Shown: one piece after another, positions 12,043 through 63,207 of the stretch
Numbering within the stretch: position 1 is the stretch's first letter
Layout: each line of letters starts with the position of its first letter
Source of the DNA: Paragordius varius
Taxonomy: Eukaryota; Animalia; Nematomorpha
Length of the DNA: 64,000 nucleotides
Direction: 5' to 3'
NCBI GenBank assembly: GCA_964247055.1
Contig: OZ176053.1
Coordinates: 7,254,001-7,318,000 of the forward strand
Made by a program: the position numbers and the translations under genes
The notes under the pieces: generated by a model
What the model was told of the DNA's origin: nothing
The model's input: the letters and a program-made list of their open reading frames with translations, nothing else
Databases searched by the model: none

Positions 12043-15000
12043 ATGGTATCACACGAGAACATCAAACTCAACCCTTTTTATCATCGTCCCCATTGGACAT
12101 TTTATGAATATATTAAAGTATTAATATATATTTTATGCAGTTATTTTATATGTCTTTCACAATTTTGCCCTTTAAAATTATTGGGTCTATTGTTATATTT
12201 CTTGTATTGCATTTTTTTGTATGCCTTGCATATTGGTTTGGTTCTCGAGGAAAATCATTAAGCATGAAAAAAGATTATATTGACAGCCATATGATACATG
12301 AAAAACCATTATCCGGATTTATCTATTGGTATATTTTATGTATTATATAAGTTTGTTAGTGGATTACATAATTAATCATTTGGTAAGAGCATTACTGTGG
12401 GTGTGTGGATTTTATAACATAAAAATAAAAGGAAATCCCGATCCAAATGCCAAAGTTTTGGTTTGTGCCCCTCATTCTACATTTGCTGACAGTATAGTGG
12501 TTATGTACCCACGGTTAAAATCTATTGTAGCGAAAAGGGCAGCAAAAAATCTTCCAATTTTCGGAAGTATTTATTTATTATTATAATTATTTTACATTTA
12601 GCCTCCCAAAAGATATATTATTCTTCTTTTATGTTATGTTATATCGTTAGGGTTATTTTTGAATCAGTATTTTACGCCAAAATGTTTATCTCCAATTTAA
12701 CAATTTTTCATTATTTATACAATCGTTTGATTGTTTATGAAAAATGTGGACATGCATTTTAAATTGCTGATAAAAACTTTGTTATCTTTTTTATTAGTTT
12801 TTTCATTTACGATTAATTTAAACAGTATTACAATTGTTCAATATTATAAAGCCTACAGCTTATATTAAACTGTATTTTTTTCTATCCGACTGTTTTATAT
12901 GTATCGAATTAAGCTCTCTTTGTAAAAATATTTGAAAATAATTAACTAATAGTATGATTGCTCATTTTTTAATTGTTCTTTTTGATTTAGCATTATTGAC
13001 TTTTATCCAACCAATATGGGTCGAAAGAGGGGAATCCAAATCCAGAAAAGTTGCTCTTCAAACTATAAGTAATCGTGTACATGCTATGGACATTGAGTCT
13101 GAAAACGAAGAGAATCAAAGCAATGGTACAACAAGTATAAACAAATATTATAGTATTTAATAATTTTTTCCCGCATTAATTATGGTTTTTTGGGTCATTT
13201 TCTATACAATTCTATCAAAGTATTTAAAGTTATTTTCGTAAAATGTTTTTTTAAGATTTGTTTAGTTAAGTTTTTTTGAAGTCAAACAAGGGCTGGTATT
13301 TATCATCATTATTATATCCCAATATAATATTTGCACTATTTATTCATGTAATTATATGAACCCTTATATAATTAATTAATTACGAGCACTCTTTTTACAT
13401 TTGCGAATTGTTAATTGAATGATTGTTGAATTATATACCCAATTATATAAATCAAAAATAATAGAGGTTCATAACGGAAACTTTGACACACATCAATCAT
13501 GTAATGCCCAAATTTTAAAACGACGAAATTCTTTACGTTGTCAAGAGAAATGGCCACAAATTTGTATATTTCCTGAAGGAACTTGTACCAACCGCAAAGC
13601 ACTGATTCCATTTAAAAAAGGTTTTAATTTTTCTCCTCTATCAAAAAAATATTTTATGATTTTTTTTAACTTCCCATTAATGAACATATTTAACCATTTT
13701 GTTTTCACGAATCTATAGTTATTGCAATTTTGGATTAGAAAAACCGGTTTGAATATGAATTAGGGTAAATCAACGAAATTTTGGCTTTTATTTGTCATAA
13801 CTTTTAAACAAATGTTCAAATTTTTATGTTATAATGATTTAGGTGCATTTTTTCCCGGTCATCCAGTGCAACCCGTGTGCATCAGATACACAAACAAATT
13901 TGTAATTTCTAAACTTTACTTTAGAACACTAGATTTTTTAATTTTCTATATACTCTCCAAATTTTATATGCATTCTAGTTATCTTATTTTAAGCTTGTCA
14001 TTATAAATATTGTTTAGAAATAATTGATATCCCAATATAATTACACCAAATTTTTTACTGTGTTGTAATTTGTTTTTAAAAAGTACCATAAAAATATATT
14101 GTTAAAACTATCTATCTAAAATATTTTTCAACATTATCTAGGATTGTTTAACTTGGACGTGGGATGGACCGCATACGTAACGCTTTTATTTTTTATATGA
14201 AAGAGTTATTTTAATAACCATTCATTAATTATAATATTAACTTTTATTTCATGTATGTATTTAACATATAGTTTGTTGGTTATATGGTGGTCCTTATGTC
14301 AATTCCAACTATCCATAACACTTGAGGTAAATTATTTTTATTTTTGTGTGCTATATAAATGGGATGAAAATGTCATGATTTGCCATTAATCCCTGACATC
14401 TTTTTATATTTTTATTAAATAGTTTCTAATATTCATATTTAACATGGTTGCTTTAATCCTACTATATGATTTAGTTATTCATTAAATGATTTTATAATGT
14501 ATTATTTAGTAACTAGTGTATGTTAACGTATTTTAATAAAATTATATCCGAATCATCTTTTTTTTATATGTTCGAAAACTTTTAGGGCAATATAATAGCA
14601 TCTATAACATATATGTATTTATAATTTGATTTAGTATCTTTCAACTTATTATCCTTCCAAAGAAGAACGCCAAGATCCCAATTTATTTGCTCAAAATGTG
14701 CGTGAATTGATGGCTAAGTAAGATAATTAAATACAATGATTTTCTTAAAATGAAGCTTTATTAGGATTAGATTTGACTGTTATCCGTGACTAATTTAAGT
14801 TTAGTATAAATATGTAAAATCTTTAAAATTCCAAGTCATGTTTTCAATATGTTAAAACCACTATTATGATTGCTTATCGTTTTGTTTATGTTCACCATAT
14901 ATTTACATTTCATGTCATAATCGAATGGTTATAACTGTAAATGACTGCATTATAAGCGGTTAGGCTGGTTAATTTTTGACTGGCCGAAACCCATTTCTAT

Positions 15001-16378
15001 TCACTATTTTAATAGCACTATGTATGCTAAATTAATTCCCTAATTCGCTTTGTTTTACATATATTGCATTTTTCGTCGTTGTTTGATTTATTATCGCGAA
15101 TGATTACATTTATAAGCGGTACTACCAGTTATTTAAAAAATTTAATTGGTCAAAACCCAAGCCCTACTAGTAATTATAATTATTTGATTATATTTATACG
15201 ACAGACACCTCAATATCCCTTTAAGTGATTACACCTATGAAGATGTGCGAAATGATTGGGAAAAAACTCAATCAATAAAACGATTTCGTTTGATTCAATC
15301 GGTTAAGGACGATTATACAAACAACAAATATATATCATGTCTTTTAAAGCTCATTACGAAATTTTCGGCTCATATATCTGCATTGACACTATTCAAAAAT
15401 AGACACCACGAGGTGTCTTACGTTATTTCTGAACAAAATGATCTGAATATAACAAATTTTACACACATTAACAATTGTGATAATGATAAAACTGTGATAA
15501 ATTTCATTATAAACCAAAAATGTCTCAATAACCACTCATTAGCTGGTTGTAAAGCCAAAATTGAAAAATGTTTGGATACCTTTTCAGTGCATAAGGCAAT
15601 GCCTCCTGATAAATTACGATCATTATGGATAAAATTTTACCAATCCCTAAACATCTCTAATCCAAAAGTATGATTATCTTGTTTAGAAACTAATTATTTA
15701 TTAGTATGACATGTCTTTTAATATTTTTTCAAATAATGCGACTTTTTAATGTTGTTAAACATGAAAATTAGTCACATCAACCTTACGACCAGATTAATTA
15801 TATTTATGATAAATTAAGTTTTTTTATGTTATATACAAATTATATAATTTGCAATAGATATCATCCATTCATTTAGATCTCATTACTCAAAGTTTTCAAA
15901 TTTTGCAGTTTAGAAAATACCTAAAAACGGTACAATATTATTGATTTTAATTTCATATACATTATTCTATATTTCATTTTTTAAGTGTTTCTTTTTTTAA
16001 AAAAATTATAATAATTAAATTATATTATAATGAAATCATTTAATTTTCATTCCATTGTTAGAAGGATGATAATAGCCAAAGTTCAGTTGCTAAACATATA
16101 AACGGAGAATTAAGCCAATCTTACAGTGATAAAGCTAATCTTGATCTTGATGTATTTTTAGGTTACAACATTAATTATTTTATAACCCCTTGACATATAT
16201 ATATAAATTTATATTACTTATGTGTTTAGCTGATCTTCAAAATCAACTCATAAATATTTTTGGGCAAACAGCTTTCGATCTAATTAGTCAAGAAATGTAT
16301 GATGGTTTAATTGAATACCTATCTAATGATAAACTCCATGGAAATGGTATACTTGACAAAAAAACAAAAGCAGCATAA
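12043..16378 (+). CDS. LPCAT: Lysophosphatidylcholine acyltransferase (LPCAT1/2-like), 13 exons, about 597 aa
   Basis: Exons 12043-12117, 12141-12328, 12352-12566, 12991-13134, 13465-13620, 13843-13901, 14142-14176, 14272-14326, 14635-14717, 15205-15667, 15858-15929, 16062-16161, 16230-16378 join in frame (1794 nt). Motifs PHSTFAD (HX4D), WPQICIFPEGTCTNRKAL, GAFFPGHPVQPVCIRY, DCLTWTW, DPNLFAQNVRELMA, SDYTYED. Confidence 0.93.
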
Positions 16379-16954: not shown

Positions 16955-16994
16955 TTTTTACGTTTGACAAAGATTACTTGTAGTAATCGAAAAT
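16955..16994 (+). repeat. Dispersed hairpin repeat family, copy 1 (TTTTTACGTTTGACAAAGATTACTTGTAGTAATCGAAAA)
   Basis: Near-identical copies at 17830-17872 (inverted), 60054-60092 and a partial copy at 40903-40928. Internal stem GATTACT/AGTAATC. Confidence 0.75.
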
Positions 16995-17829: not shown

Positions 17830-17872
17830 AATTTTCGATTACTACTAGTAATCTTTGTCAAACGTAAAAAAA
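17830..17872 (-). repeat. Dispersed hairpin repeat family, copy 2 (inverted relative to 16955)
   Basis: Reverse complement reads TTTTTTTACGTTTGACAAAGATTACTAGTAGTAATCGAAAAT. Confidence 0.75.
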
Positions 17873-20501
17873 TATAATTAAAATATAAATTATGATATAA
17901 ACTAAAATTTAAAGTATAAAGTAAAAATAATTAATGAGATATGAAACTAAAAAAACATGTGTGTATTGTTATTTTTGAACAAACATATATTTTGTTTAAG
18001 CGCTATTCTTTAGCTTTTAACGGTGATTAACATTTTTAACCCATTTATAACTTTATTTTATCAGACAAATTAAACAAAATAAAAGCATATTAAAGTATTA
18101 TGCCATTATTTAAACTTAATTCTAAGATTGGTTTAAACTTTGAAGATAAATTGGCTTTTGCATCGGGATAAAATTTGATTTCCGGTGTTTTTATGTCTGA
18201 TAATAAATATTTTTGACTGTATAAATAATCTTACCATGCTTTAATATTCAAATAGCAGAGATTTTCTAAATTTTGTCTGTATTTTTTTCGGAACGGAAGA
18301 ATTTTTTGGTGTTGCAGGCCATTTCAGGTTTTCATGATAAAATTATTACAATTTATCGATTAAAAAAAGGTTAAATGTAGTTGAACTCCTTTTTGGTTTT
18401 ATCTTAAAACCTAAATAATTCTTAATATTAAATTGTATATTATTTGTCATTATTTTTATCTTGGGGTTCGAAACAATTTTGTTTTTTTAAACCCTTTAAA
18501 AAGCTAATAGAATAAAGAAATAATTATGTTGTCTACAATAATATCCACAACTGATCTGTAAATTTAATTTTTATATTAATATAAATAATAAATGTTACAT
18601 CTAAACTAATTGCATTATCTAAGATTTTTAAATTTTTTTTTATTAAAACTAAAATATGGAAGCTGTGCCCCTGCACGCCTACCTCACTTTAATTAAAATA
18701 ATTTTTTAAGTGCTTTGGAAAATTGGGAACTAAATTAGATTCACGCACTCTTTTAAAATGAAGTTACTATTAGCTTTGCGAGAAAAAGGGAAATCCTGTT
18801 ATTTTCAATTATATTTTATTTTTAATAAAGCTAAAAACAGACAAGTTTTAATAGAATTTCCCCAATTTGGCTATTCAAATTTCACATAATTATTATATTT
18901 CTAATCAAAGCACAAAAGCTGTTTTGATATGTTTATTGCGTACCAATTTATGATTTTTATCATGATTTATTAAAATATTTTATGCATTTTCTATAAAATC
19001 AATCAGAATTCTCGTTTATTGAAAATTAAAATATATCCAAACTTTACGATACAGAAATAAATTAAAAAAAATAAAAAGTATGTTAATCTCCATCTAAAAT
19101 TTAGAACATGTTACGAATTATTTTTACTAAAAATATTGGTTCTCTGGTAATAATTCTAAATATTTTTTTGCTTTGTAAGCTCAATATTTTGGTTTACTAT
19201 ATTATAAACAGCTTTTTCAAAATTAAAACCCTCTTATAACGATTTTAGATATACAAAATATGAAGACTTTAAATGTCGAAATAAGACAATTTTATATCTA
19301 TTAAATCAATCTTCCAAAAATTTAATACTTCCAATCTTGTGATATTGTATGATACATCAGAGGCAAAACTATTATTTAAATTTTTAAATATAAATCTTAA
19401 TATGATATCTTATTTAAGGAGAGTTTTGTTTATTTTCGTTATAGTCATTAAAGAGCTTAAAAAGAGCATTATAATCCTATATGTTTTCGCAAAGGATATT
19501 TTCCGACGCGTCCCCAAAAAATCTAAAAAATTTATATTTAAAATTTTGATAAATACTATAAATTTATTTTGATAATTTTTATCGCATTAAAAAGCTAAAT
19601 CTCAATTTAAAATATAAACTTTTGTATTATACCTCTTGTCACTTTTTACGGGTTAACCGTTGAGTGTGACTTAACCCTAGGTTAGTTAAAAATGTTTTTT
19701 TAGCCATAACGATTAGCAAATATGAATTTTACATGAGTAATAATTTTTAAATAGTATCATTTTTATATTTTTACGCGAAACTTCTTTTTATTAGCGAGTA
19801 TAACGTCTTACAAAAAAATATATATGCTGTATAAGAGTGGCCATAATCCGTGTAAGAATTAATATAAAAAAATTAAATTACGTAATGTTTAATAAAATCT
19901 ATTATCCCACAAACAAAATAATTCCCGTAAAAAAGTACACCTTTTTCCGTTTATTATTTATATTAATTTATGAGGAATAATGGGAATAGGTGTGTATTCT
20001 AAGCGCAATTTTTTACAGGTTAAATCTTAGGAAATCGTTTTAATTGGTAGAGAAAATAAAAGGGTATGTATATGATTATATACAAAAAAATAGTAAATAA
20101 ATTAATAAAATAAGGGATTTTAAGTGTGTTTTTTTTTGCTTTCTTACCTCAACCAACGCAATTAATTTTAATCCCTAAAAAAATAATCTTGGAATTAACA
20201 CATTAACATCATCATCACCTTCCAACTTTCATTAATTTAACTGCAAACCAATTATAAATTATTGGTGTGCCATTTCTATCATAATTTTACCCAAATCTTT
20301 ATTTTATAAAAAAGGTGTAAACTGTGTATGCTAACATGGATTTTTATTCGCTATATTTATCAGTTATTATATGTCGTAAAATACAGAATGAAAAATGCTT
20401 TACCCCAATAATTAGACCAAAAGTTACATATGAAATAAAATTCTAATGATATCATATCTACCACTTCAATATAGACAGATAGATAGATAATTATTTTACC
20501 C

Positions 20502-34574: not shown

Positions 34575-34620
<46 letters not shown>

Positions 34621-42381: not shown

Positions 42382-42413
<32 letters not shown>

Positions 42414-45400
42414 TCTGATAGGAAAACTTATGGTGCTTTTGGTTTTGACCCTTATGAGTGATAATAAAGTTTGTTACACTTTTGTGGTAGAAAATGGCAA
42501 AATTTGCGCATATTTTTTGAACAGAACTTTTTGGTAAAAGCTAAATGCTTCATTTCAAATAATATCACTAATATATATCTTAGTATACATATAAAAAGCA
42601 AAACAAATTTTCTAAAAAAATTTAATTGTTAGATGTGGGCTAGAAAAATCCCATATTTTTTTATTTTCATAAAATGGGCTAGTTCTCTTAAAATAAACGC
42701 AAAAATGCCACGATGCGATGATTTTAAATATATAAGCTAAATTTTGATATCAACTAAAGATTATTTTAAATAAATGCATATCTTATTTAAAAATTTGGTT
42801 GTTTTCAAAATTTGTTGAAGCGTATATTTTACACTATTTTCAACGCTGGAAAGGATATAAAAACACTTTTACTATAAAATAAATTCGATAATGCTGAACA
42901 TTTCTATTACCTAAGATTTTCAATTAAACTATATATTCGACTTTAATTTAATGTTAAAAAAAATTGTGTTTTTTTACAAAAGTTTACCAAATTTTTAAAG
43001 TGCAAACAAACTTTTTTTTATAAATAAAACAAATTTTCGAAAAAACTGCGGTTGTATGGGTTATGTTTTCTAAAAAGGGACAAAACAAAGACGATATATT
43101 TAGAATGTGGTATTATGATAACACGTTTACCTAACGATAGATTCAATCTTAACAAAATTTTGATCTTTAAACAAGCCCTTGAAATCTTCTTCAAACAATG
43201 GAGCATCAGATTCGGCATCAGAAAGATCAGAAAATGATTTTGACGTTGCCGTGGGGGAATTGTTTATCCACAATTCTTGCACTGGACCCTGAAAGCAATG
43301 GTCTTGATGCGTTTTGTGTTTAAAGGTAAAACATTCCGTACAAAATCGAAGTGGTGTATTATCATTCAAATTTCTACATTCCAAACCAAAACAAGTAAAT
43401 TCTGCACGTGATTTCATGTTATCTTTGCAATTCTAACAATATGATAAATATAAATAAATTTAAAACTAATATGAAAATGCCATATATTACATATTTTCTA
43501 ACATAAATCATTACTATTTTTAGTTGCAAACGACCAACGTTTAAACAAGTAAGATTGGGTCACATCTGGGCAATTGTTAATTATTTAAATTTTTTATGTA
43601 AAATCACCAGCAAGTGACTTCTTTAAATTATCTTAATTTCGACCATACTGACAACTATTTTGGATTCCTACCAATGTATCAATAATACCAAAACATTACC
43701 CAACATATGGCGATTGAATCTTTCACATTTCGTGTAATATATTTTTGAGTATTAATTTTTGTCAAAAATAGTATAGTAAAAAAGGCGTGATAGGGGCGCC
43801 AAACTCTTACATAATAATATGTAAAGGGGTAGATTTCTAACCCCAGAACTAAGCAATTTTTCCATCAACTGTCAGCAATGTGCAGGCGAGTTTTGCTTTA
43901 AGTACTAATAGATTAATAATCAACCTTTGATAAAAAAGGTAAAAAGAGGTTCTAAACTGTATAATTTGTATTTTTTAGCATCAATACAGCAAAGTTAATA
44001 TTTATAAGGGATTATAATTATAAAAATATTAATTATTTTTATATGCCATACAGTCGAAACCATGATATAGGGCATATTATAACTGTCGCTTATAATATAT
44101 TAGCATTTCACATTTGTTAAAAAATATATTTATTAAAGTTTAGTTGCCAAATATAGTTTAAAGTTATACTTTCCATTCACACCGAATCGATATATGTTTC
44201 AAGGGAGAAACTAATGGTAAAAACTGTTTTTCCATTAATTTTGCATCTATGCCTTTCATTGAGGACGTTATCAAGTCGTAACATGTGGTACAAAATATTG
44301 TGGGTGGTCCTCGTTCACAATATTTTTGACTTATCAAAGGATTTATGCAAATCTTAACAAAAATAGATCAAACAGAATTATTAAACAATATAAAGTTTTT
44401 TATTAATTCCGTTGTAATTATGACCATAATGCTACCTGGGTTCCTGAAAAGTTTTTCAGCTCTGCACATTTGATATTTTGACATTTGGGCCTTCCCCACG
44501 CTTATGCAAAAATACATTATAATTTTACTAAAATATATATTTTTTAAAAAGAATCAAAGAATCCGTGATATATAGCATCCCCTCCCCCCTTATAGTTAGT
44601 TTTTAGGCGTCAATAAAATAACAGGCTTATGCTATCTATCATGCAAATTTATATAAAATCCTAGGTTTAACGTTATAATCTGTGAGGATTGAGTAATGGC
44701 ATAAATATACTAGTAGATAAGTACTTTGGAGACTTATGATAACCCAAAAATAAAATCTTGTAAATTTTGCAAATAATTATATCAATAGTTTTTTGGAAAA
44801 AATTTCAAAAAACAATTTCAAAATCCCTTAAAAAACGGTCATAATGCACAACATAAGCCATGTATTCCTTTAATAGGCGTCAGTATGGGGAGGTTAGTTT
44901 CATAAAATTATTCATTATAAACTATGTTATTTGATGCAGGTTCTTTAAATCATAGATAACACCGAATTAAAAACTTACATATAAATTTGGATTTTCGATC
45001 AGACGGGTTAGGGTTTAGCGAGGGCCAATACGTAAATAATAATTTTGCACAAGTGTAATGCGCATTTTCGTTTCCATACGCTATAACTGATATCAAGTCC
45101 TAAACAATTTTCGACGATGAATGAAAAAAATATATGAAAGTTTAAAATTAATTTGGTTTTCATACTTTTTAACATGCCAAAATCCAACATATACTTTCAA
45201 AATTTTAACATATATCTTTTAATTTAGCAGGTCAAAATTAATGTATAGCAAATAATAATTATTGCAGAAATAAGAAAGAAAATCGGCATTATTAAACTCT
45301 TGTCGGAAAAGTTACAAAACCAAAAAACGGTTCCGATAAATAATTGTTAAATTTTTTTTATTATCCAAAATTTTTTAATTTTAATGTCATGGTAGTTTTT

Positions 45401-47482
45401 AAATTTATTAAATAAATTAGGGACAATATATTTTCTTAGATCATAAGCCTATATTGAGTCTCTGTACCAAGGCCAAGGCGAGGTCCAGCATCCAGCGGCC
45501 CTCAAAAAAACTGGATATCCATAATTTGTAAAATGCTCATAAAATTTAGTAAAATCAACATTTCAAAAATATGTTTTCTAATTTAGTTTATTCAATTCGC
45601 AAGAATAGAAAAAAATGTTTTATTTGTCTGCATTTCTCAGTCTCTAATTATATAAATGTCTATATTTTTATTTTAAATGCGGCCCGCCGTTTTCTTAAAA
45701 TATTTCGCTCGCGAAGACATTTGCGTTGGGCCCCGTTTTATACTATATCAAAATAATAGACAAATTATAAACTATAAAAAAATAACCATTTGACCAAAAA
45801 AATAATGGAACCGAAACAGTAACTATTTTGGCTAAAATACTGAAATCGAGACCAAAATTTTTTGTCAAAATAAATCTTTAAAATCGAAACCGAGGTCATT
45901 GGGTCAAAAAAGCGCTTTATAAAAATATTGGTAGGAGTGTTTGGAACCAGAAGCAGTAACAAAAAAATTGACCTACCACCATAACCATAGTATATAATAT
46001 ATGAAGTGTAAATGTCAATAAAATCAGAAAATATATACTTTTGTAACATTATATTGTTATTCTATTAGGCAAAAAAGCAAGAAATTATCACTAGAAACTT
46101 TTTAAACCACTTAAATTAATGGGGAAAAAATAATTTAAAAATATGTAAAAATATTTTAATTTAAATCACACAGCTTAAACCACGATTTTATGCATGCAAA
46201 TTACAGTGTCACGAAAGTATTCTTACCAATTTTAAACATATATTGTGGTAAATAAACTTTTTGTTTTTACACCCACACAATATATTTTTAATTTTAGGGC
46301 CCTAATTCTGAGAAAATAATTAGAATGTTAATTAATATAATGTTAAACTAATATATATTTTATATGATAATTTCTTGGTCATCATTTTATATTTAGCAAA
46401 ACAACAATATATATAAATATATACTATTTTAATTATACTGACGACAAAATATATACTACTTAAATACAAATGCATCAAATAAAACACAGAAAATTCCATT
46501 GATCACATTACACATAACTGAATCAATATTTCAAAGAAAATCATATATAACCAACAAAGGAATATATTATAAATTTTTGATGTAATAATTTTAATAAGAA
46601 TAATAAATCAATAATTATGTACATGCAATAGATATATTCATTTTCCGGAGGGATAACAGCGTGCACAACATAAAAGGCATGCATCATCATCTTACAAAAA
46701 CTAAACACTTAAACGCCTTGTGTAGAAATTGTTATACTTCGTAAAAATTAAGTTTATAAGCCATAAATGTTTCACACAATTGTGCTTGATAAGCTATAAA
46801 AAAAACATTGTTAAATAAAATTTTAAACCTTTTTCTTGCATATTATTGAAAGCGTTTGATAAAATGGATGGAACAGCAAAATAGGCATAATTAATATTGG
46901 AATCATCTATGTGATTGTTAAAATTTCAAAAAGCATACTATATACAACTGGGATTATTTTGTAGGTTAAGATGTCCAAAATTTCTTTGTAAAAAATATGA
47001 GGTAAAACCAAAAACAAATTTGACAGTTTAAAGGGGAGTTCTTGTAAATTTTCATAATCCATAAAAATGTAGGAGGTTTCATAAGCAGTAATAATTATTT
47101 TGGCCAGAGCTATATATTATCAAAAAGGCATTACCATATTCATTGTCATTAATATAGGGAAATGTTACAACTATTTTGTCCAAAATATTAGAGAACTGGG
47201 GATAATTTAAATTAGGGAAAACCGATATTCTATCGGTACTTCTTTGCAGATTAAACATATCAAACGTAATTTCATTACAATCCTTGAGAATGCTGATATA
47301 AAAAAAATAAATTATACTTATCAAATGTCAATATAAAATATTTAAGCCCGTTAGCCAACTCAACCCCACTAGGTATGGGTACCACATTGTGAATCACTCG
47401 ATTACAAAGTGCATCCAAATTGTTTAATTTGGAGTTGACTAGAATTAAAATCAAATTTACAAGATATATATTTTGTTCCCAT
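22578..47482 (-). CDS. UNC79: Protein unc-79 homolog (NALCN channel complex subunit), multi-exon, about 25 kb; internal exon structure only partly resolved
   Basis: The spliced N-terminus MGTKYIS|FNSKLNNLDALCNRVIHNVVPIPSGVELANGLKYF matches UNC79 (MSTKAEQFASKI...HNIYPVPSGTDIANTLKYF). Internal matches: EEFGRLLAALFQWFDSTAY, EAGLFRLFCLIPYDLI..MPQWMQAL, MVKMGIAQIIAWELSK, IREFNDINTNIRLCSWTLLGTL, MVSLHLLSIIETLQEINSS. The last exon 22757-22578 ends FLEWITKLQFKLSKMEVQSTMAIHIYTI*. Confidence 0.95.
32217..33689 (-). mobile_element. 5'-truncated RTE-clade non-LTR retrotransposon (family A) in a UNC79 intron, sense orientation
   Basis: An uninterrupted frame from DWEKSIIFPIFKNKGD through RT motifs (FVDLEKAYD, GLHQGSVLSPLLF, LYADDL) to GRPKLTWS...HGNPRYPGT*, followed by an (ATGG/ATGA)n tail. 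No clear TSD. Confidence 0.95.
33806..34075. mobile_element. Degenerate MITE (GCGGCCCGC-type, hAT-like); related copy at about 45465-45740
   Basis: Both loci share GCGGCC(C/G), TGGA(A/T)ATCCATAATTTG(C/T)AAAAT and AAGACATTTG motifs in otherwise AT-rich intron DNA. Confidence 0.5.
34578..34613. repeat. (TA)n microsatellite; others at about 1460, 6750, 23860, 35400, 39090, 42390 and 59277
   Basis: Read directly from the sequence. Confidence 0.95.
39127..39360. mobile_element. TA-target MITE (Tc1/mariner-like), 234 bp
   Basis: TIRs CAATTCATATTCACCCT ... AGGGTGAATCTGAATTG flanked by TA (39125-39126, 39361-39362), with internal repeated AGGGTG(AA) motifs, next to a (TA)n tract. Confidence 0.7.
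45465..45740. mobile_element. Degenerate MITE, same family as 33806-34075
   Basis: Shared motifs GCGGCCC, GGATATCCATAATTTGTAAAAT and AAGACATTTG. Confidence 0.45.
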
Positions 47483-47495
47483 CAAAACTTATGCC

Positions 47496-49402
47496 ATGAG
47501 TTTTCGCATGCGTTCTTTTTATCATGCCTCCGTTTCAAAAAATTTCAAGGAGTTTGGCAAAATAAGAATAAAAAATTATTCTACAAATGGTGGATGTCTG
47601 GAAAATATTCAGCAAATAGTCGGATATAATCCGTCTTTTTTGAGTTTGAGAAATTTGTTCAATGATGAGATATCAAATATGGCTCAAAATTTGGCAAAAA
47701 TTATTGATAGTAAGCATCCTCTGATTCAAAATACCAAGTTTTACCATTAAATAATTTATAGAAATTTAATATATGAAAATAATTTTGTTCAACTTCATGG
47801 TATATCTATTCTTCTCTTTGCCAAATTATTTGGTATCCCTTTGACCGAAAAATACAATTACAAAATGTCAGAAAAGCAGCACGGAATATCCTCAACGTAT
47901 GAACTAGTATCTAAAGTTTTTAGGCAAAGGAGTTTATCAGAAGTTTCTCAATTAATATACATGTCAAATAAAATTCAACAAAATATAATGGAATTCGACG
48001 TTAATAAAGCGCCCGAGGATTCTATCATAACTGGTAATAATTTAGCCATTTTAAGCGGGGATTATTTATTAGCAAATGCGTCACAAAGTTTGGCCAAATT
48101 GGGAAATACTAAAGTAAATCTATAATTTTAATTCTTAAAACAATTTATCACTTAATTTTATTCCATTTTGACTTTATGAATATTATATGATACTTTTATA
48201 GGGTGTTTCTCCAAAGATTAATATGTAATTGAAATAATTTATTTGTACTTTTTAAATAGTATTTTACTATATTATTATACACATAAAGTTTTTTGACCTT
48301 CAGATATTTTTAAATCCAACAGGTAATTAATTATTTTCAGATATTCGGAATGTCAATTATCTCCAAAATAATAAATATACATTACTTTCATGAATACTTA
48401 CGCAAAATATTAAAATGATGTTTTTTATTCAGATAGATATTTTTTAAATATTAAATAATAATCCTTCCGCATAGTCAACCTCATCCCATAACAATTAGTT
48501 TTAAGCGTTATTTAGTGTATATAATATAAAAAATATTAATTGAATGGTTATATTAGGTCGTGGAGTTAATGTCTCAAGCCATTGCTGATATGATGATTTC
48601 CGAATTGCTCTTGTATGAAGATCCAACTCCTATTTCCGGAAATAATCTTACTGATAATAAAAGCGTTGTGCCATCCCATCTTTTAGCTTATAGTGCAAAA
48701 TCTGCCCTCCTTTTAGTCAATCACGATGAACATAGTCAAGCCATAGTTTTTGATTTAGGCAATCGTTTGGGATGTGCTCTAGAAGTTTTTTAAACATTTT
48801 TTGATCCATTTTAAAAAAAAAAAATGCAGTTAGAAATTTTTTAACCAGATAATTTACATTTTTTTGCCCAAGTTTTTATAATGAAATTATTTAAACATAG
48901 GACGGTTTTTTAAAAAATAGCTGTTGATGTTGTTTAAAAGGATAAAAAAATGTATATATAATATAAAGAGGATTATCCTCATAATTATAAATTGAAACAT
49001 AATAATTATTTTATGGTTCTTATAAAAACCATGATGAAAAAATATTTCGAAAGAGCACACGTTTTTTGATGTTATAATAGAAAGAATATGGTGCCGGTTT
49101 TTAACCCTAACAATTTTTTTATTTTTAAGCCAACTATCTCACAAATTAATTTAAGTTTGTATTTTCCATTTTCTATTTATATATGTTTATTGCATATAAA
49201 GGACCTTTACCGAATCAAAGAATTGTCAAGTAGAGATAATGAAAAATCTGAACCCGATTTGAAGAATATGCATGATTTAAAGGACAAATGCAAAAATGAA
49301 TGCTTAAATATTATAAATAGTTTAGAAAATTTGAATAATGTTAATATCGATTCCAAAATAAGTTTTATTTCATTGATAAAATCATTAGCCAAACATTTGT
49401 AA
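47496..49402 (+). CDS. PDSS2: All-trans-decaprenyl-diphosphate synthase subunit 2 (PDSS2/DLP1), 4 exons, about 340 aa
   Basis: Exons 47496-47737, 47762-48113, 48557-48784, 49202-49402 (1023 nt, in frame). Motifs [76 protein letters not shown]. Basic mitochondrial-type presequence. Confidence 0.92.
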
Positions 49403-49829
49403 ATATTGTAAATAAACACATAATTTTATTATTTCCTATTTTTTTCCTAAGTTTATAAATGATTTCATATTCATTTATATACTTATCCATTAACTTATCG
49501 ACACTTAGGCATAATATTTATTGAGCAAAGTATCATAATGAGCTTTGAATTTTTCACCCAATACTTGATCATAACAAAAAATATCATAGTGTTAAAAATG
49601 ACATCTTAATTAAATTTATGAAAATAAATAATTGAGTTGCATTTTAAAAATTTAATAAACTGTAACATAGCTGAATTGAACAAAAAAAGAACAAATTAAC
49701 ATTGCCTAATTTTTGAGCGACGAATTGACAAGTAGTGGGCGTTAGACAAAACCTTAATTTTATTTTGTTCATACACCATATAAAACCGTCATTCTTTCAC
49801 TGGATATCAATTATATTATTTGTAAACAT

Positions 49830-53900: not shown

Positions 53901-55455
53901 TTCATAATTCAGGTGTCGTGTTATAATTGTTATATCAGTTTATTATTATAATTATTCGGTATTGGAATCGTTATGATGAAATAAAAAGTATTAAATTAAT
54001 TGGTAGGAGGATTTTGTAATTAAGATATAATGTTAATAGTAAGAAAAATAAATAAGATATAAATATATTATTGTTATGATAGTAGGTAGAAGTTATTAAA
54101 AATGTAATTTCAATAATTATTACACTAGTCGACAAATTTGGACATTTTTGAGCACCACCACTCAAACTTTTAAATTATGACTAATTTCAGTGTTTTAAAA
54201 CTGAATGTGAAAAAATTTTTGATCCCGCCAATCAGAATTTTGAAATATTATAGGTTTTTCAATTTTTCAAAAACAAGAGAAAATTAAATATAACTTTATA
54301 ATAAAATGTTATTATCTTATAAACTTAATATCATATAATAAGGCGTTTTAAACTCTATCTTTTGAATATAAATATGTCATTTAAATATCAGAGAGAAAAA
54401 AATAGTACGGACTTAAACGTCAAAATTTAGTCTTTTTCTTTCAAGTGAATTTTTAATACGTATAAAAAAATTTTAAAAAAATACTAAAAAAGGCATTCTA
54501 TGGTTTAAACCTTCGGCTTTCAGATAGACTATATTTTTTTGTTAGTTTTTGTTCTTTCGAGTACTTATTAGGCTTTTTTTTCTTGAGTTGGTTCTTACAA
54601 AAAATCCTTTATTTATACCTAGTGGATATACTTTATTTTTTAAAATTATTGGTTGTTTTGTATTTTTAATTTCAGATGGATGTTGTGTAGACACTTTTAG
54701 TAGAATTTACTATTATGGGATTGGACCATTTGTATTTACCTAATCTTTTTATTCAATTTAATTGTAGAATTTATCTAACTTTATTCTGTGAATTGGTTAA
54801 TTTGACATGTCAATTTGCCTGGAGTTTGCTAGCAAGTCTCTCTTATCGGGCTTTACGATTACTTATTGTTATCTTTGCCATATCTGGCATAATTGGATCG
54901 CTTGGGGGATATGCAGAGCTTGTGCAGCCGCCCGGATCTATCACACTATACATAAGCCCCTTTTAGATTTTTAATACTTTGGCTCTTAGCTTGTTTAGTA
55001 TCTTATTTAATACCTAGAATTTTGTTATTCATGCATGGCATATTACTTGTATCGACTTGTTCGTTTGAATATTTAAACATATGTACACGAGGAATGATTG
55101 TTATTTTTGAATTAAATACAAATTTAAAAATTTCGGAAAAATCCTATTGGCGGCCTCAATTTTCTTGTTTGTTTTGGCCTTTCCATGCCATTAGGTATAG
55201 AAAATGCAAAAATAATGGGGTGGTGCAAAACCTTGTTGAGCAGTGCTATCGTTTCGTTAGAGAGTTAGTAGTTTTTGAATAAGACGTGTTCATGGTGTAT
55301 ATGTTGAGGCGAGGTTTTTACTTTTCACATGCCCTTGTGAAAAAACTCCTTACGGAGTAGATGTTTTTGAACATCCAAAACTGGCCACTGCTGTTCGTTC
55401 ACCAAAAGTGATCCGACCAACACCGCGGGGAGGTAGCAGTAGGACTTTGTTGGTC
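50934..55455 (-). mobile_element. Full-length RTE-clade non-LTR retrotransposon (family B, about 4.5 kb), APE-RT ORF disrupted
   Basis: APE begins at 53905 (MNNLNTFKFATWNIGTLNGK...CCLQETR). RT fragments: FLDLEKAFD, GLHEGCVLSPLLF, IFADD, V..FTYLG, ending HGNLQR* at 50959. Tail (ATCAAGT)2, 15-bp TSD, several stops and frameshifts. Confidence 0.95.
55387..55455 (-). ncRNA. HDV-like (delta-like) self-cleaving ribozyme at the element 5' end
   Basis: Minus strand: P1 GACCAAC (55455-49)/GUUGGUC (55421-15); J1/2 AAAGUCCU; P2 ACUGCU (55440-35)/AGCAGU (55392-87); P3 ACC/GGU; L3 UCCCCGC; P1.1 CC/GG; P4 UCAC-UUUUG-GUGA; J4/2 ACGAAC with the catalytic C at 55397. All elements are in the canonical nested double-pseudoknot order. 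Confidence 0.92.
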
Positions 55456-55724
55456 TCCTATGGTCCATATATTTAAAAATAATTAATGACTGAATGTAGT
55501 AAGTAATTATGTTTTAGGTCTAAAAAGTATGGTTGACCTTACAAAAAATAATAGTTTATACCTTTTAATGATTAATCTATTTTAATTTAGCTGATTTCTA
55601 ACATAAAAAAATAACTCTGTTTTCGTTCGATTAATTAAGTCACACAACAATGTGCTTTTATTCTTAAATTTTTACCTTATCTAAGAATTAAAACTCTACG
55701 TATTTATATTCACATTTATTATCT

Positions 55725-58700
55725 TTATACACTATTTTTTTCAATAATATTGTCAGTTTCTTCATCGCTTTGTTCCAAAAATTGTTCCCAATTTTTGAGT
55801 CTTTTAGCTTCGTCTTCTGGTGTTTCGACAATCTAAAAAACATTTCACATAATTAGATTTATACTAAAAATTTATTCGCTTGTGAGTTTTAACAGCGCCT
55901 AAAAAGTAATGCGCTAATGCTAATACACTTTTTAATAGGGTTTTTAACGTCAGGTATTTCGACTCTCATAATAAGCCAAAACAAAAAATTACATTTAATC
56001 ATTTATTTAAATTTGTTTTGATATATATATCATCAAAGCTGTTGTTCTTCAGAGTTGAAGGTAGCTGATTTGAGATAAGTTTTTATTGCTGTTTTCCAAT
56101 TGTTTCTATTTTCCGCATCTTCTATTTTTAATTTGGTCTCAGTAAGATCATCATATATAGTACTGATCCAGCTTTTGAAGGGTCTGCCAGGCTTTGAGCT
56201 AGGTGTGGAGTAGGACATCATTATATGTATATAATTATCTGGTGGTCTACGATGGATGTGACCAGCCCATCTCAGTCTTTTAGCTCTTATAAAGCGATCA
56301 AGAGCAGTGATATTAAAGATTTTATAAGGGCCAAATTGATTATTAAAGTTAAAGAGTTTAGGATTATGTACAAAAAGTATTGTATTGAGTATTTTGGATT
56401 CTGATCTTTAGAATTTACCAAGGTTTGACTTTGTCATGGGCCAACATTCCGTGCCGTAGGTTAGTGCGGGACGGATAATGGTAGAATATAGTTGCGATTT
56501 TGTTTCAAGTTTTATGTATTTATTATTTATTATGTGTTTTAGTGCATGGTATTTTTTCCATGCTTCAGATGATCTGTGTTTGAGGCCATCACTGATACCT
56601 CCTTTTGCGGATATTTCGTCACCCAGATATTTAAAGTGAGTAACAGTTTCGTAATTGTAGGTATTAGGGATTGAGTTTAAATGTTGTTCTGGTATGGGTA
56701 GGTTGTCGATGCAACTTGGGCAAGTAAAGGCATCAACCCTAAGAGATTTTAGGTTTGAGCATTTTTTATGTATCCAGAAATTACATTTAGTACACAATAT
56801 AGAATTTGCCTTTACAGCTAGGCTGCAAATTCTACATGGGTACTTAATGGGCTTTATTATATTGTCGTGCATTAGTTTTGTTTTGCTGGGATTGATTTTA
56901 AGGCCATGACTTTCCAAGCAATTTTTCCATTTGTCAATAGATAAGATGAGATCGTCTTCAGATGAGCCCATTATTACCAGATCATCTGCAAAGAGCAGTT
57001 CCCAGGGTAAGCCCCTGCGAATGTTCTTTGTAATCTCATCAATTATTATGATGAATAGTAAGGGACTCAGGACAGAACCTTGGTGCAGCCCTGAGTGTAT
57101 ATTGATGGATTCTGATAGGCCATAGAAAGTTTTGATTTGGGCTTTGGAGCCGGAATATAGCAACATTATGCTTTGGATAATCCATTCTTCGATTCCCTTT
57201 CTTCTTAGGGCCCATGTTATCATCGATCTTGGGATAGAGTCAAAAGCCTTCTCTAGGTCGAAGAAGGCATAATAGAGAGGTGTATTTCTGAGATGGGCTG
57301 CTTGCATTTGGTGGAGTATGAAAATCGCATCAATTGTGCTTTTGCCAGATTGGAAGCCAAATTGAATGTCGTCTAGATGAACTTTAAGTTTAATCTTATT
57401 GTATAGAATGAGCTCAAAAATTTTAAATGTGTGTTCCAAGATTTTAATGGGCCTAAAAGAGCTAGGTAGGAGTGAATCACCTTTTCCCTTGTAGATGGGT
57501 ATGATGATGCTGTTTTGCCAGTCTTCAGGGATAACTTCCATTTGTATGATGAGGTTAAAAAGTTAGATAAATGATCACTTATTGTAGCAATGGGTTTAAG
57601 AATGTCGACAGTAACTTCCGACAATCCTGGTGTTTTACCGTTCTTTAATTTTAGAATCGCCGATTGAATGCAATTTGCATCAATGAATTCAGGGCACCCT
57701 AATGTTGGCGGTACATAGGGTAGGATTGTGTTATTTTCTTGATTTAAAGTATTTTCAAAGTAGTTTGCAAAGGTTTTATTAACTATGGTAGGAATTTGAC
57801 AGATGTTGTTATTGTCTGTTTTCACCGATTTTATATATGTGGTGGTGTTGGTTGGGTTTGAATGTTTGATGTATTTGTATATTGTGTTATTTTCTGTATG
57901 TTCGTCAATATTTTCTGCAACTTCAAGGGCTTTAATGTTTATAGCTTTACGTATTTCTTTTTGGCAGTTTCGTTTTGCAGATAGGTAGATGTTTTTATTT
58001 TCAATCGATGGATTTTTCCTGTAGTTTAGGCTGGTTTTGCGTTTAAGTTGAGTCAATTTACGGATGTCTTCATTCCACCACCAATTGTGGGTCGAAGGAA
58101 TCCGCCGGTTATGCTTTGAACGTCCAACCAAGGAATCAAGAGTATTGACGCATATAGTTTTTATATTATTCCATATTTCATTTGGGTTTAATAATGTTTC
58201 CTTTGTCCATAGTAGTTTATCAGCTGTGGAAGCGTAGGAATTTTTTATATTATCATCTTTAAGTTTCCGGTATCTGATAGGTTGTTTCTTTGTGGGGGGG
58301 TGAGTAATAGTATGGGTGTTCCTTATTACAAGTTCTAAAATCATTAGTTTATGGTTTAAATTCAAGCAAGGTATTCCTTTGATATTAAAATAATTTTTCC
58401 TTTGAGTTTGTTTGCATAAGAAGTAATCAATCATGGAATTGTTATTTCCTGAGGAGTAAGTGTAACGTTGTTTGAGGGATTTTTTAAAGAAAGTGTTTAT
58501 TATGCTTAGTTGACAGCTGTTGGATAAGTCCAATAAAAATTCACCATTTTCATTTGTCTCGTTTAATCCCCAACCTCCATGTACAGATTGAATAGGATTT
58601 GTGGATATATGTGAATTAAAATCCCCAGAAATTATCAGTTGATGATGATCGGGTACATTTATTATTTGCTCATGTAATTGAGACCAAAAAGCTTCTTTAT

Positions 58701-61700
58701 CTTTTAGTGAATGGCCGTTGTGAGGCGCGTAGATCGAAAATAAATTGTATGTTATATTATTAATAAGGATTGTAATGGATATAATGCGTTCGTTTATATA
58801 ATTAACTGCCTTAATATTGTCATATAATGAGTTGTGGATGAAGAAACCCACACCAGCTGTTTTAACTTTCTTGTTGCCGTTCCAAATTAATTTAAAATCA
58901 AGAATGGATTTGGTTCCGGAATTTAGCCATCTACATTCTTGAATAGCGCAAATTGGAATATTTCTTTCCTTAAGCACGTCAGCAATCTCCAAGCCTTTAG
59001 ATGTTAGCGAATTAATGTTCCAGCTGCCGATGCGAAATTTAGAAGGATAGTTCATTAGTTAAAAGTATGGATAAGTAATTTATGTATTGTAGGATAAATG
59101 AAACACTATTTTTTACAGAGCGGATGTACTTCCTGGCCTCCAACTGCTAAGGAGCAGATAAGATAAAAATATTTTTTTTTTAAAAAAAAAAGGAGCTGAG
59201 CCGCGAACTGCAGCTGATTACATGAATCAATATGAATTTTTCCAAAAATATGAATTTTTCCAAAAATGAATTTTTCATATATATATATATATATATATAT
59301 ATGCAGAACATTTTAAAAAACTGAAAATTAAAAACAGTAAATGTTAGGTATATATACTTTATATTTGGTACGTCCGTCCCACCTTTCAAAATGTACATGC
59401 CGATCTTTAAAACTGAAATTTTCACCCAAATTATCCATACATTCATCGGCTTCCTCAATTGTGGCAAATGTTACAGTTGTTACGCCCTCTGGGTGTCGCT
59501 GTAACAAAAAATTATAAATATTTTTAGCAATTAGCAAAAGTAGCAATGCTAATTTTATATTAAATATTGCCAGATACCATATATTGCAAAGAGCAATCGG
59601 TTTATTATTTTTTTCGTTTTTTCTTGTTCTTAGCCTAATAATAATGTTTGCTGTGTATTCTAATTGGCAATAATAAATGAAAAATTAGCAATATCCTTTT
59701 TTTCAAACTAAAAAACGTAAAATTTTTAAACATCTCGTTCAGTACTTTCATACATAATAAAGTGGTTGATTAGTAAATTTATTTAATATTAAATATTGGA
59801 GAAACCAGGTATATGAAAACAATATTATTAGAATGGAGTCCAACAAAAAAATAATAAATTAAATACTATTGAACAATAGTCTTAACGTGATATGAAATAT
59901 TCAATCATTTGTTTAGGTTTGAAAAAAAATTAAATGAATTTGATTGACTGCATATAAGCATCGGACAAGTTATTATTTCTACCGTCAATAAGCCTCTACT
60001 CATGTAACATCATAACTTGAAAAAACAAAACAAATAGTTTATATTTTATTTTATTTTTACTTTTGACAAAGATTACTTGTAGTAATCGAAATATTATAAT
60101 AAATTTATATTATTTTTGCTGAATTATTCCATATATAATAGTATTTTTATTATTATAGAGTATAATTTGTTTTAATTTAATTAGGCAATTAGGGTTCCCC
60201 TTTTAAGTAATTATAGTATAAAAAATGTTAGTATTTAAGCAAATGTGAAATATATGGGGCAAAATGTTATATATCGGTTTTTTCCCTCAATATTTTGTTT
60301 TTGATGCGAATGTTTTTTCTTAAACAATCAGTATGTCTAAAAGTATATATATAAATTAATAATAAAAGATTGAAGGAAATATTAAATTACTAATGAAATA
60401 AAAGCAAATATAATTGTAATTATGCATCACTTACATCGTAAACTTTAATCTTTTTAACGTTTCCATATTTTGAGAAAATGTCCCTTAATTCTTTTTGATA
60501 TTTGAGTATGAGGGAAGGATCATCCTAAACAAAATTATATATATAAATTGCGTTTCCAATCCGTAACATTTAATTAAAATTTAATTGTTTTCAAAATAAA
60601 AAAACTCACATCAAATAATTTTGGATCAAAAACATTTTTGATGACTAATGTTTTTTCTCGTCCATGCCTTAAACCGGGTATAGGTTCCGGCTTCCATGCT
60701 AACAATCTAATGCAAAATAATTTGGATTATTTTTTAAAAAAGAAATATATGCCACCCTATATTGTATAATTCGAAAATGCTTTTTTTATAATAAATTGTA
60801 TTCTGTTATCCTGCCAAATATTATTTGGGATCTTACGGTATTTGCTAATCAAACATGTAGTGGTTTTAATTTTAACTCATTGATTAAATAATTGTTTTTT
60901 TAATTGAAAATGAGAGATTGTAAATTCAAGTAAAGTAAACATTTTATTTATTAAATAAAGGAAATTTGGGTAAATAATTTTAATAACTAACTTTTCTTGT
61001 TTGCTTTCCTTTGTTTGTTTTTCCGTGCCCTTTTTCTTTTTAGGTTTTAATTCGGGATTATAATCTCCCTTCATAGTAAATTTAGCCCGTTCAACCTTGA
61101 TACATTTATCTCGCAAAATGGTTCCATCAATAATCTGTAAGGCCAAAGTTACTGATTCAACCTAAATTTAATATATGAGAAATAAAAAAATGACAATATT
61201 TGTCAATTTTGTCGTTTTAATTAAAACTTAGTTGATAATTATCTTTCTGTTACATTTAATTATATTTTTTTTTAAAAACCGAATTTTAAGCATAATGAAT
61301 ATAATAAGGTTGTCATAAATTTTAGATAAAATTTGGTTAAAACGAGTAAAAACTTTACTTTTAAATAGCAACAGCGGCCATCACCCTTAACATTGCCATC
61401 GGGATCGAGGTATAATTTAATTTTTAATTGCTTAGTATTTGGATCTTGCATTATTATTCCACATTTCGACATAAGTTCTGTGAATTCATCCAAGGTTATA
61501 TCCTCGGGTAAATTGGAAACGTATACATTCGTATTTTTGCTATCATCCATTTCAAACCATTCTAAACATTCAAAAAGTAGATAAATTTCAAAGTTTTTTT
61601 ACCTTTATCACATACTTATCCTACTTTTAAAACCAATTTATTATAAAGAAGTATTTGTTCAGTATACTATTTATAATTTCTTATATAACACAAAGAATAG

Positions 61701-63207
61701 ACGAATATTCTGCAATCAAAAGCTTAAAGCTATCGTCCATCTGCCTATAAATGATACTATTATAAACAGATGTTAGGACAATTAAGTGAACTTAGTCCGC
61801 TTTTTATAGAAGATGAGGATAAAAGGACTTTAAAGTTTAGTTAATCAAGAAAATAACGATAACTTGTCAGAATCATCCAATTATCATTATTATACCTTGA
61901 AAACCTATACTTTTATAAAAAGCTGAAGTTGATTTTGTAAAGCATTTTTTTAACTTTTAAAATAGCTTAACTCTAAATTGAATATTTAAATGTGCTCATA
62001 TACTTAATTGTGCAATAAGGATTAATGCATCCTATAAATTACTTTAAATTTAAACAAGATTGATGCGACAGTCTCTATGTTGATCAATCTTTTATTTTTT
62101 CTTCAAGAAGTTAGCAATATTATTGAAATCATTTTTATTGGTTAAGTTATTTAAGATTACCGGATGTTAAAAGCTTTAACAAAAAAATTATGGTCGAACC
62201 TTGACCTAAAAAGTGGGCATAAAAAATAGGCTAAAAATAAAAAGTATATTAAGATTCTTTAATATAAGTTAGAGCTGCATGTAAAATAAAAATATGTTTT
62301 AAAATTATATAATAGTGTTAAAAAATCGAATTTGACTTATATGGGAATATTTTTGAGCCATATATAAAGTGTCACATATTTGGAGTTTACCAATTTTATA
62401 TAAAAACAATCGTTGCTTTTTTCACAAAATTTTGGAAAAATAATGTAAATATAGACAATTAAATTTTTTAACGAGATCAATTATATACCAAAACATATTT
62501 ATAACCAAATCAGTATAAGATGGTAAAAAGAACAAATTTAAATAAATTAATTAAAATTCAACTAAAACTCCTTTTTCCCGTTTTCTTAAAAACGTTCGCT
62601 TAAAATTTAGCAAAAATTAATATTATCTTCTAATAAACTAATATAATACCAGGTTTTTTTTCTTCATCTTCTATTTTGGGGTCACTGAAAATTTTTTTTC
62701 GTTTTTTATCAATTTTATTAGTGTTGTTTAAGGCTTTAGGAATAACCCATTTATTAGCAGTGGTATCCCATTCATATATAACATTATGTGTTTCAGGATC
62801 TCTGTATATATAGCATCGCTTTTCAAAATCGAATTCCATATTCTTATCCATATTAGTCACGGATGTATTTATATTAGGAATTAAATTATCTGTGCCTTCA
62901 ATGCACCATTGTTTCAGTTCAGAGTTATATTTTAGCTTTTGTTTGGATATTGGATCAGTGTAAAGATATGATCCGTCATTAGATTGAGATACTCCATAAC
63001 TAGCCTGATAAAATGCTAAATCATTTTCATCAATCTAAATAAATTATAATATACCTTTGGAAAATAGGCTTTTTTGCTATCATCCCAAATATATAAAATT
63101 CCGTCTGAATCTCGATATGATTTGGTATCTTTTTCAAGCTTTCCAGATTTTTCCAATTCCTCAAGTTTTAGCTGGTGTTTAAAATCGGTGTTTTCCGAAT
63201 CAACCAT
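55725..63207 (-). CDS. HTATSF1: HIV Tat-specific factor 1 / Cus2 homolog (U2 snRNP factor), 8 exons, about 448 aa
   Basis: Exons 63207-63055, 63034-62650, 61561-61359, 61161-60992, 60706-60610, 60524-60435, 59498-59358, 55832-55725 (1347 nt). Motifs YIWDDSKKAYFPK|IDENDLAFYQASYG, NTNVYVSNLPEDIT..MSKCGII..KIKLY..KGDGRCCYLKVESV, RHPEGV, WDGRTKYK|IVETPEDEAKRLKNWEQFL. Confidence 0.95.
56031..59276 (-). mobile_element. Near full-length RTE-clade retrotransposon (family C, about 3.2 kb) in the last intron of HTATSF1, sense orientation
   Basis: APE from ATG 59055 (GSWNINSL..AIQECRW, SGDFNSHI, MIDYFL) and RT (FFDLEKAFD, GLHQGSVLSPLLF, LFADDL). Frameshifts near 57540 and 56410; ORF ends at 56033. Flanked by (AT)n on both sides. 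Confidence 0.93.
60054..60092 (+). repeat. Dispersed hairpin repeat family, copy in a HTATSF1 intron
   Basis: TTTTTACTTTTGACAAAGATTACTTGTAGTAATCGAAA matches 16955-16994. Confidence 0.75.

Follow-up and report, generated by a model that had tools for sequence, protein, structure and literature searches.

A window of 64,000 nucleotides (nt) from the hairworm Paragordius varius (contig OZ176053.1, positions 7,254,001 to 7,318,000; "the window" always denotes this whole stretch of DNA) contains four recognisable animal genes, which encode an LPCAT-type acyltransferase, UNC79, a PDSS2-like protein and HTATSF1, and which are interrupted close to their start codons by very short segments that begin with GT and end with AG. 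These segments are very probably ordinary spliceosomal introns of the U2 type, which have shrunk to 20-35 nt in this nematomorph lineage. A preliminary description of the window, made from its letters, had listed ten such segments, with lengths of 23, 23 (or alternatively 20), 24, 22, 25, 25, 32, 35 and 20 nt, and all ten have GT and AG at the expected ends. Nine of the ten lengths are not a multiple of three, so that the reading frames on either side differ; the 24-nt segment of the PDSS2-like gene is a multiple of three, but contains an in-frame TAA. The list was one short, since a 27-nt intron of the PDSS2-like gene at 47897-47923 had been missed. Seven of the resulting eleven coordinate sets, namely UNC79 introns 1 to 5 and PDSS2-like introns 1 and 2, share both position and phase with an annotated intron of the hairworm Gordionus. 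The other four (LPCAT intron 1, the two alternatives for LPCAT intron 2 and HTATSF1 intron 1) stand outside this orthologue comparison. Thus, five introns shorter than 30 nt are backed by orthology (22, 24, 25, 25 and 27 nt), and there are three further candidates of 20-23 nt. The idea that these are real, very short GT-AG introns has good support in UNC79 and PDSS2, from orthologous positions, equal exon lengths and co-linear proteins, and is plausible, on weaker grounds, for LPCAT and HTATSF1. The same is true for the protein junctions at which similarity had been said to resume: TK|NLIY and DN|ILKD are borne out by Gordionus proteins, while for PK|IDEN of HTATSF1 a phmmer search against solved structures returned no HTATSF1 match.

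Intron positions in UNC79 and the PDSS2-like gene

A profile-free search with one UNC79 exon against 1.84 billion representative proteins led to XP_065316536.1, the RefSeq "protein unc-79 homolog isoform X1" of Gordionus sp. m RMFG-2023 (G. montsenyensis, GCA_954871325.2). The Gordionus protein was mapped exactly onto its own locus, which yielded 49 exons, and it is co-linear with UNC79 of the window over the whole gene. The first six exons are 22, 121, 158, 171, 78 and 56 nt long in the window model and in Gordionus alike; therefore, all five tiny introns between them have the same position and phase in both species. The introns themselves differ in length:

47439..47460, minus strand: UNC79 intron 1, 22 nt, phase 1, GT..TAG; 46 nt in Gordionus
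47293..47317, minus strand: UNC79 intron 2, 25 nt, phase 2, GT..CAG; 43 nt in Gordionus
47110..47134, minus strand: UNC79 intron 3, 25 nt, phase 1, GT..TAG; 41 nt in Gordionus; exon end "aatatg" conserved
46907..46938, minus strand: UNC79 intron 4, 32 nt, phase 1, GT..TAG; 49 nt in Gordionus
46794..46828, minus strand: UNC79 intron 5, 35 nt, phase 1, GT..TAG, with a T-run; 2425 nt in Gordionus; exon end "aaaaag" conserved
45100..46737, minus strand: UNC79 intron 6, the first long one, 1638 nt; 445 nt in Gordionus; GT and AG predicted from Gordionus exons 6 and 7

When the boundaries were predicted from the Gordionus exon lengths only, AG was present at 24 of 25 acceptors and GT at 25 of 26 donors. 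For the five tiny introns, the chance of finding all ten dinucleotides correct is about 7.5e-15, given the frequencies of GT (0.041) and AG (0.036), and the match to this independent gene model is beyond chance. The translated product points in the same direction. The spliced UNC79 N-terminus of 202 residues aligns with the Gordionus protein from residues 1-202 to 1-202 (49.5% identity, E 3e-68) and with 13 other full-length UNC79 representatives at 24-30% identity. In a phmmer alignment, residue 10 of human UNC79 lies opposite residue 10 of the spliced model, so that excision of the 22-nt intron gives the correct distance from the initiator methionine. Single searches with UNC79 exons 3 and 4 against solved structures gave chance matches only. 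The claim that kilobase introns occur beside the tiny ones could be verified as well, by the 1638 nt of intron 6 and by another UNC79 intron that carries a reverse-transcriptase open reading frame (ORF). At two other places in the gene, window positions 41417-41758 and 36523-36981 (minus strand), unbroken alignments run across the exon junctions 12/13 and 23/24 of Gordionus; its introns 12 (517 nt) and 23 (346 nt) hence have no counterpart here and were either lost in this lineage or gained in the other.

The PDSS2-like exon that follows the 24-nt segment led to CAK9295261.1, a protein from the same Gordionus genome, whose locus contains two tandem copies. Three introns of the window gene could be compared:

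47738..47761, plus strand: PDSS2-like intron 1, 24 nt, phase 2, GTTTTAC..TAG, with an in-frame TAA
47897..47923, plus strand: PDSS2-like intron 2, newly found, 27 nt, phase 2, GT..AG, in frame and stop-free
48114..48556, plus strand: PDSS2-like intron 3, 443 nt, at the position of a 41-nt Gordionus intron

At the codon of the 24-nt segment, directly after "...TK", both Gordionus copies have a 40-nt phase-2 intron that starts with GTTTAC. The 27-nt segment is in frame and free of stop codons and is thus invisible to frame logic. Its removal is not forced and the GC content of its interior is not unusual for an exon, which would also suit a retained coding insertion of nine residues, or a segment that is spliced in some transcripts only. 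This alternative is rather improbable, however, because the segment has exact GT and AG ends and shares codon and phase with a 39-nt phase-2 intron of Gordionus, and the preceding exon measures 135 nt in both species. If the segment is removed, the alignment to CAK9295261.1 has 53% identity and three gap positions; if it is kept, identity is 50% with 12 gap positions, and the additional nine residues form an insertion exactly at the Gordionus intron site.

DNA reads, splice motifs and the LPCAT and HTATSF1 candidates

The genome is AT-rich and has homopolymer runs, in which indel errors of long reads are common, and changes of frame were what drew attention to the segments in the beginning. 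It could accordingly be argued that they are assembly errors, marks of decaying pseudogenes or frame changes that are handled at translation. Contigs assembled from the reads of four runs (X1, X3, X4 and X5; three samples from two studies) were therefore compared with the window over 44900-49500. Run X3 belongs to another study and has a different organism label, and X4 and X5 represent a third sample with a visibly different haplotype. X1 contigs are identical to the window over 45360-47343 and 47360-47574, and X3 contigs match it over 46542-47300 and 47403-47615. UNC79 intron 1 is covered without difference by X1 and X3 contigs, and intron 2 by an X1 contig. Contigs of all three samples cross the UNC79 sites and, among the differences listed, contain no indel that would restore the frame. 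In the other individual, four of the tiny UNC79 introns carry substitutions, at 46934 (X4, C>T), 47127 (X4, G>A), 47302, 47305 and, as A>T in X4/X5, 47448, and in the one record that is listed in full, 46901-47192, the only exonic substitutions are at 46979 and 47036. X4 and X5 have an extra T after 47738, by which the 24-nt PDSS2-like intron becomes 25 nt long. Among the indels listed, those in tiny and long introns concern 1 nt, and one in a PDSS2-like coding exon takes out 3 nt, at 48654. Such a pattern is expected if non-coding segments lie between constrained exons, and it leaves little room for assembly error at the UNC79 and PDSS2 sites. Furthermore, each break is flanked by GT and AG where Gordionus has an intron, and the UNC79 exons mapped from Gordionus have open, conserved frames from one end of the gene to the other. 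The reading as indel errors, pseudogenes or translational frame changes is thus extremely improbable, and for UNC79 and PDSS2 it is close to refuted. One minor X4 contig (depth 327 of 1053) has a 2-nt deletion at 47762-47763, where the exon that follows the 24-nt intron begins; if genuine, the deletion would shift the frame, but it may reflect a paralogue, a path through a repeat or an artefact of alignment.

The tiny introns differ from their surroundings in base composition. The guanine-cytosine (GC) content is 32.9% in exons, 23.6% in long introns and about 12% in the pooled interiors of the tiny introns, which contain between zero and six G or C each. Donors consist of GT followed by A or T (GTAWWW or GTTTWA), and acceptors are T/C-AG, in one case possibly A-AG. 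Strings similar to TTAAT, TTAAC or CTAAA are found about 8-18 nt before the AG of most tiny introns, some of which also contain T-runs; at a GC content of about 12%, such strings are expected by chance. U12-type, or minor, introns have an extended and highly conserved consensus at the 5' splice site. None of the tiny introns carries this donor consensus.

Several observations weigh against the interpretation as introns. A scan of the whole window for GT..AG segments of 18-36 nt that join two open frames returned 121 candidates, and the same scan with nine control dinucleotide pairs returned 107-187. Such pairs are easily found by chance and frame logic alone is no better than chance; the case must therefore rest on independent evidence. 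The splice motifs are weak, although those of Gordionus are equally so (GT then A/T at the donor, T/A/C-AG at the acceptor), and the branch motif is indistinguishable from an AT-rich background. For the LPCAT and HTATSF1 junctions, neither comparative nor homology support was found. All four read runs are DNA-like, with contigs that continue through every intron and contain no splice joints, so that excision of the tiny introns is what we infer from genomic sequence. In the RNA-labelled runs of the species, the share of sampled window words was 0.00. Finally, 47738-47761 is covered only by X4 and X5, i.e., by the other individual, and the 24-nt form itself is not found in a second assembly.

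The LPCAT and HTATSF1 candidates have the following coordinates:

12118..12140, plus strand: LPCAT candidate intron 1, 23 nt, GT..CAG; links the frame 12043-12117, which starts with ATG, to the following frame
12329-12351 (23 nt, ..AAG) or 12340-12359 (20 nt, ..TAG), plus strand: LPCAT candidate intron 2, both solutions in frame
63035..63054, minus strand: HTATSF1 candidate intron 1, 20 nt, phase 0, GT..TAG

In LPCAT, the two frames joined by intron 2 overlap only over 12302-12347, so that a short excision is needed. AAG is the acceptor of 14 of the 48 introns of Gordionus UNC79, and hence the ..AAG and the ..TAG solution both stand. In HTATSF1, the downstream frame opens directly after the TAG of the segment, and the only GT nearby is at 63054. 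The two candidates of LPCAT and the one of HTATSF1 are each likely to be real on internal grounds, i.e., reading frames, splice dinucleotides and very low GC content. Compared to exon windows of the same length, their interiors are poor in G and C: 0 of 16 positions in HTATSF1 (P 0.0008), and 2 of 19 (P 0.02) and 1 of 19 (P 0.005) in LPCAT.

Several searches were made for outside support of these junctions. In phmmer searches against solved structures, among which is full-length human HTATSF1, neither exon 1 nor exon 2 of HTATSF1 matched this protein, be it in full length or trimmed. Word-index protein searches with HTATSF1 exon 2 and LPCAT exon 3 found nothing, and the short exons produced little in Pfam beyond Acyltransferase (13419-13715) and RRM_1 (the HTATSF1 exon). 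The 5' ends of the orthologues were not reached in Gordionus: neither gene lies in the widened UNC79 locus, the cluster of CAK9295261.1 contains no longer member, and the sequence of the PDSS2-like locus ends inside the HTATSF1 gene. Exact look-ups of the read-through ORFs retrieved no protein on record. It is therefore conceivable, though unlikely, that the introns of UNC79 and PDSS2 are real and that at least one of the segments LPCAT 12118-12140, LPCAT 12329-12359 and HTATSF1 63035-63054 is mis-modelled, for instance if the upstream "exon" is an untranslated leader followed by a later methionine start, or if another splice pair is used. The frequency of frame-joining GT..AG pairs and the lack of an orthologue or homolog that spans the junctions would permit this, as would internal methionine codons in HTATSF1 exon 2 and the two equally valid solutions for LPCAT intron 2. 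However, the upstream exons of both genes begin with ATG and contain no stop before the donor, the AT content of the segment interiors is far above that of exons (P 0.0008 to 0.05), and HTATSF1 exon 1 ends in a motif that recurs in exon 2 (E 0.013). The verified genes of the same window, moreover, show the same pattern, with one or two tiny introns just after the start.

Intron size, position along the gene and splicing machinery

Every tiny intron starts at most 654 nt from the ATG, and the tiny introns are the first one to five introns of each gene. Of the 20 UNC79 introns that were measured, introns 1 to 5 are the five shortest. A median below 30 bp for the whole intron population does not apply to this gene, as the other 15 introns measured in this one window are 83-1638 nt long. 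No further tiny introns were found between the well-mapped UNC79 segments. Later introns of the same genes range from 83 nt to several kb and carry transposon sequence. A similar arrangement is seen in Gordionus, where introns 1 to 4 are the shortest of the 48 in UNC79 (P 5e-6) and the first three introns of the 5.5-kb PDSS2-like gene are 39-41 nt long. It is tempting to speculate that intron size in hairworms is position-dependent, with introns in the first ~0.7 kb held at a minimal length (39-49 nt in Gordionus, 20-35 nt here) and later ones free to grow by transposon insertion; this is possible, but rather doubtful at present. If it were true, there would be a constraint near the promoter or the cap that acts on how long introns are or on how they are spliced, which would reverse the usual rule that the first intron is the longest, and the 20-35 nt seen here would lie below the limit assumed for bilaterian spliceosomes.

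In the reading that we favour, i.e., shrunken U2-type introns, the tiny introns are the direct counterparts of the 39-49-nt "minimal" introns of Gordionus (in one case of a 2.4-kb intron) at the same codons, and UNC79, the PDSS2-like protein, the LPCAT-type acyltransferase and HTATSF1 could be made only after they have been cut out of the pre-mRNA. Recognition would presumably proceed by intron definition through the conventional U2-type route, with a branch point about 8-18 nt from the 3' end. The shrinkage may stem from a deletion bias in a promoter-proximal zone that is kept free of transposon insertions.

The preliminary description had suggested that this lineage may have a modified spliceosome or mode of recognition. 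An altered spliceosome, or a dedicated route for tiny introns that is separate from the route for long ones and, for example, cap-proximal or co-transcriptional, would accommodate the two clearly separate size classes within single genes, the strictly 5' location of the tiny class in two species and the weak splice motifs. Such a change is improbable, however. A promoter-proximal zone without transposons gives the same pattern with the machinery unchanged, and myxobolids, which have introns of 22-27 bp, keep canonical U2 and U2AF components (PMC13644364). The window is silent on the machinery: no small nuclear RNA was found in it, and no Rfam family reached the gathering score. As the myxozoan example shows, the findings can be explained with no modified spliceosome.

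Ciliates, chlorarachniophyte nucleomorphs and dicyemids had been named in the preliminary description as lineages with introns of this size, a list from which myxobolid myxozoans are missing. Nearly all introns of Dicyema japonicum are tiny and its genome is compact, as Lu et al. are said to have found in 2019. Tiny introns are also present in the nucleomorph of chlorarachniophytes. Spliceosomes of ciliates and of the nucleomorph remove AT-rich introns of 15-25 nt, which resemble those described here; in contrast to the hairworm, these systems are unicellular, essentially all their introns are tiny and no position dependence is known. For Paramecium and Nyctotherus, lengths of about 25 nt are given (PMC5014332). 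A survey of 51 metazoan genomes published in 2026 found introns shorter than 30 bp only in myxobolid myxozoans and in Dicyema japonicum (PMC13644364). The median intron length is 27 bp in Henneguya salminicola and 22 bp in Thelohanellus kitauei and Myxobolus rasmusseni, and the authors, who found canonical U2 and U2AF components, concluded that conventional U2-dependent splicing suffices for these introns (PMC13644364). Myxobolids thus resemble P. varius in having introns of the same size range and weak motifs in an animal; however, they are cnidarians, and their whole intron population is short (PMC13644364), whereas the window contains separate, position-dependent size classes. D. japonicum likewise is a parasitic animal with GT-AG introns below 30 nt and reduced splice-site motifs (PMC6736024, as cited in PMC13644364). 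In the window, unlike in Dicyema, tiny size is confined to the first few introns of a gene, the remainder extends from 83 nt to kilobases and contains retroelements, and the genome of Gordionus is large and repeat-rich. The closest comparison is Gordionus itself, which shares genes, codons, phases, flanking exon lengths, donor and acceptor types and the restriction to first introns. Its introns, however, are about twice as long (39-49 nt) and within the accepted range for animals, and one counterpart has 2425 nt.

The main text of the metazoan survey mentions no nematomorph (PMC13644364), and in the literature searched, no statement on intron lengths of hairworms was found. New in this analysis are the exon-length orthology for seven introns, five of them in one gene, the check by polymorphism, a tiny intron that is invisible to frame logic, and the statistics on 5' restriction in two species. 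If the interpretation as shrunken introns is right, this nematomorph would represent a third, independent and bilaterian animal lineage with introns below 30 nt, and the first case in a large, repeat-rich genome with tiny and kilobase introns within the same gene. Both size classes could then be compared under one spliceosome, and the orthologous introns of Gordionus, at about twice the length, would provide a natural series on how short introns can become. In practical terms, gene finders and RNA aligners with a minimum intron length of 20-30 nt or more would split or shorten many genes of this genome at the 5' end, and tiny introns that are in frame and stop-free, such as 47897-47923, would be silently translated by gene prediction.

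Genes and mobile elements of the window

The mean GC content of the window is 27% (range 23-36% in 2-kb steps), which equals the 26.9% reported for Gordionus, whose genome has 288 Mb and consists to 64% of repeats. The four recognisable genes and the retroelement ORFs are:

From 12043, plus strand: LPCAT-type acyltransferase; Pfam Acyltransferase on 13419-13715, E 1.3e-6
ATG at 47482 to last coding base at 22581, minus strand: UNC79; human UNC79, E 5.7e-6
From 47496, plus strand: PDSS2-like; weak polyprenyl_synt match, 47-53% identity to the Gordionus protein
From 63207, minus strand: HTATSF1; RRM exon matches residues 124-194 of human HTATSF1, E 2.3e-26, and also Pfam RRM_1
32238-33695, minus strand: non-LTR (long terminal repeat) reverse-transcriptase ORF within an UNC79 intron
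52791-59058, minus strand: several long non-LTR reverse-transcriptase/endonuclease ORFs between the PDSS2-like gene and HTATSF1

The ORFs of non-LTR retroelements explain part of the long-intron class. The start codons of UNC79 (47482, minus strand) and of the PDSS2-like gene (47496, plus strand) are divergent and only 13 nt apart, and both start positions are consistent with the orthologues. With this spacing, the 5' leader of each gene must extend into the other gene, be very short or derive from exons further upstream. In the window as well as in Gordionus, the PDSS2-like gene has HTATSF1 as its convergent neighbour (19046-20371, minus strand, of the Gordionus PDSS2-like locus L001; 59331-60726 in the window). 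UNC79 adjoins the PDSS2-like gene in the window but not in Gordionus, where about 5.6 Mb of the same chromosome separate the two. The PDSS2-like gene of Gordionus is tandemly duplicated (2467-3131 and 10001-10755 of the same locus), with the two introns of about 40 nt present in each copy, and the window has a single copy. In addition, two long single-exon ORFs are located at 20487-22016 (plus strand, 510 residues) and 5380-6528 (minus strand, 383 residues). Pfam searches with both yielded only weak chance matches with E-values of up to 10; the 510-residue ORF resembles a multi-pass membrane protein.

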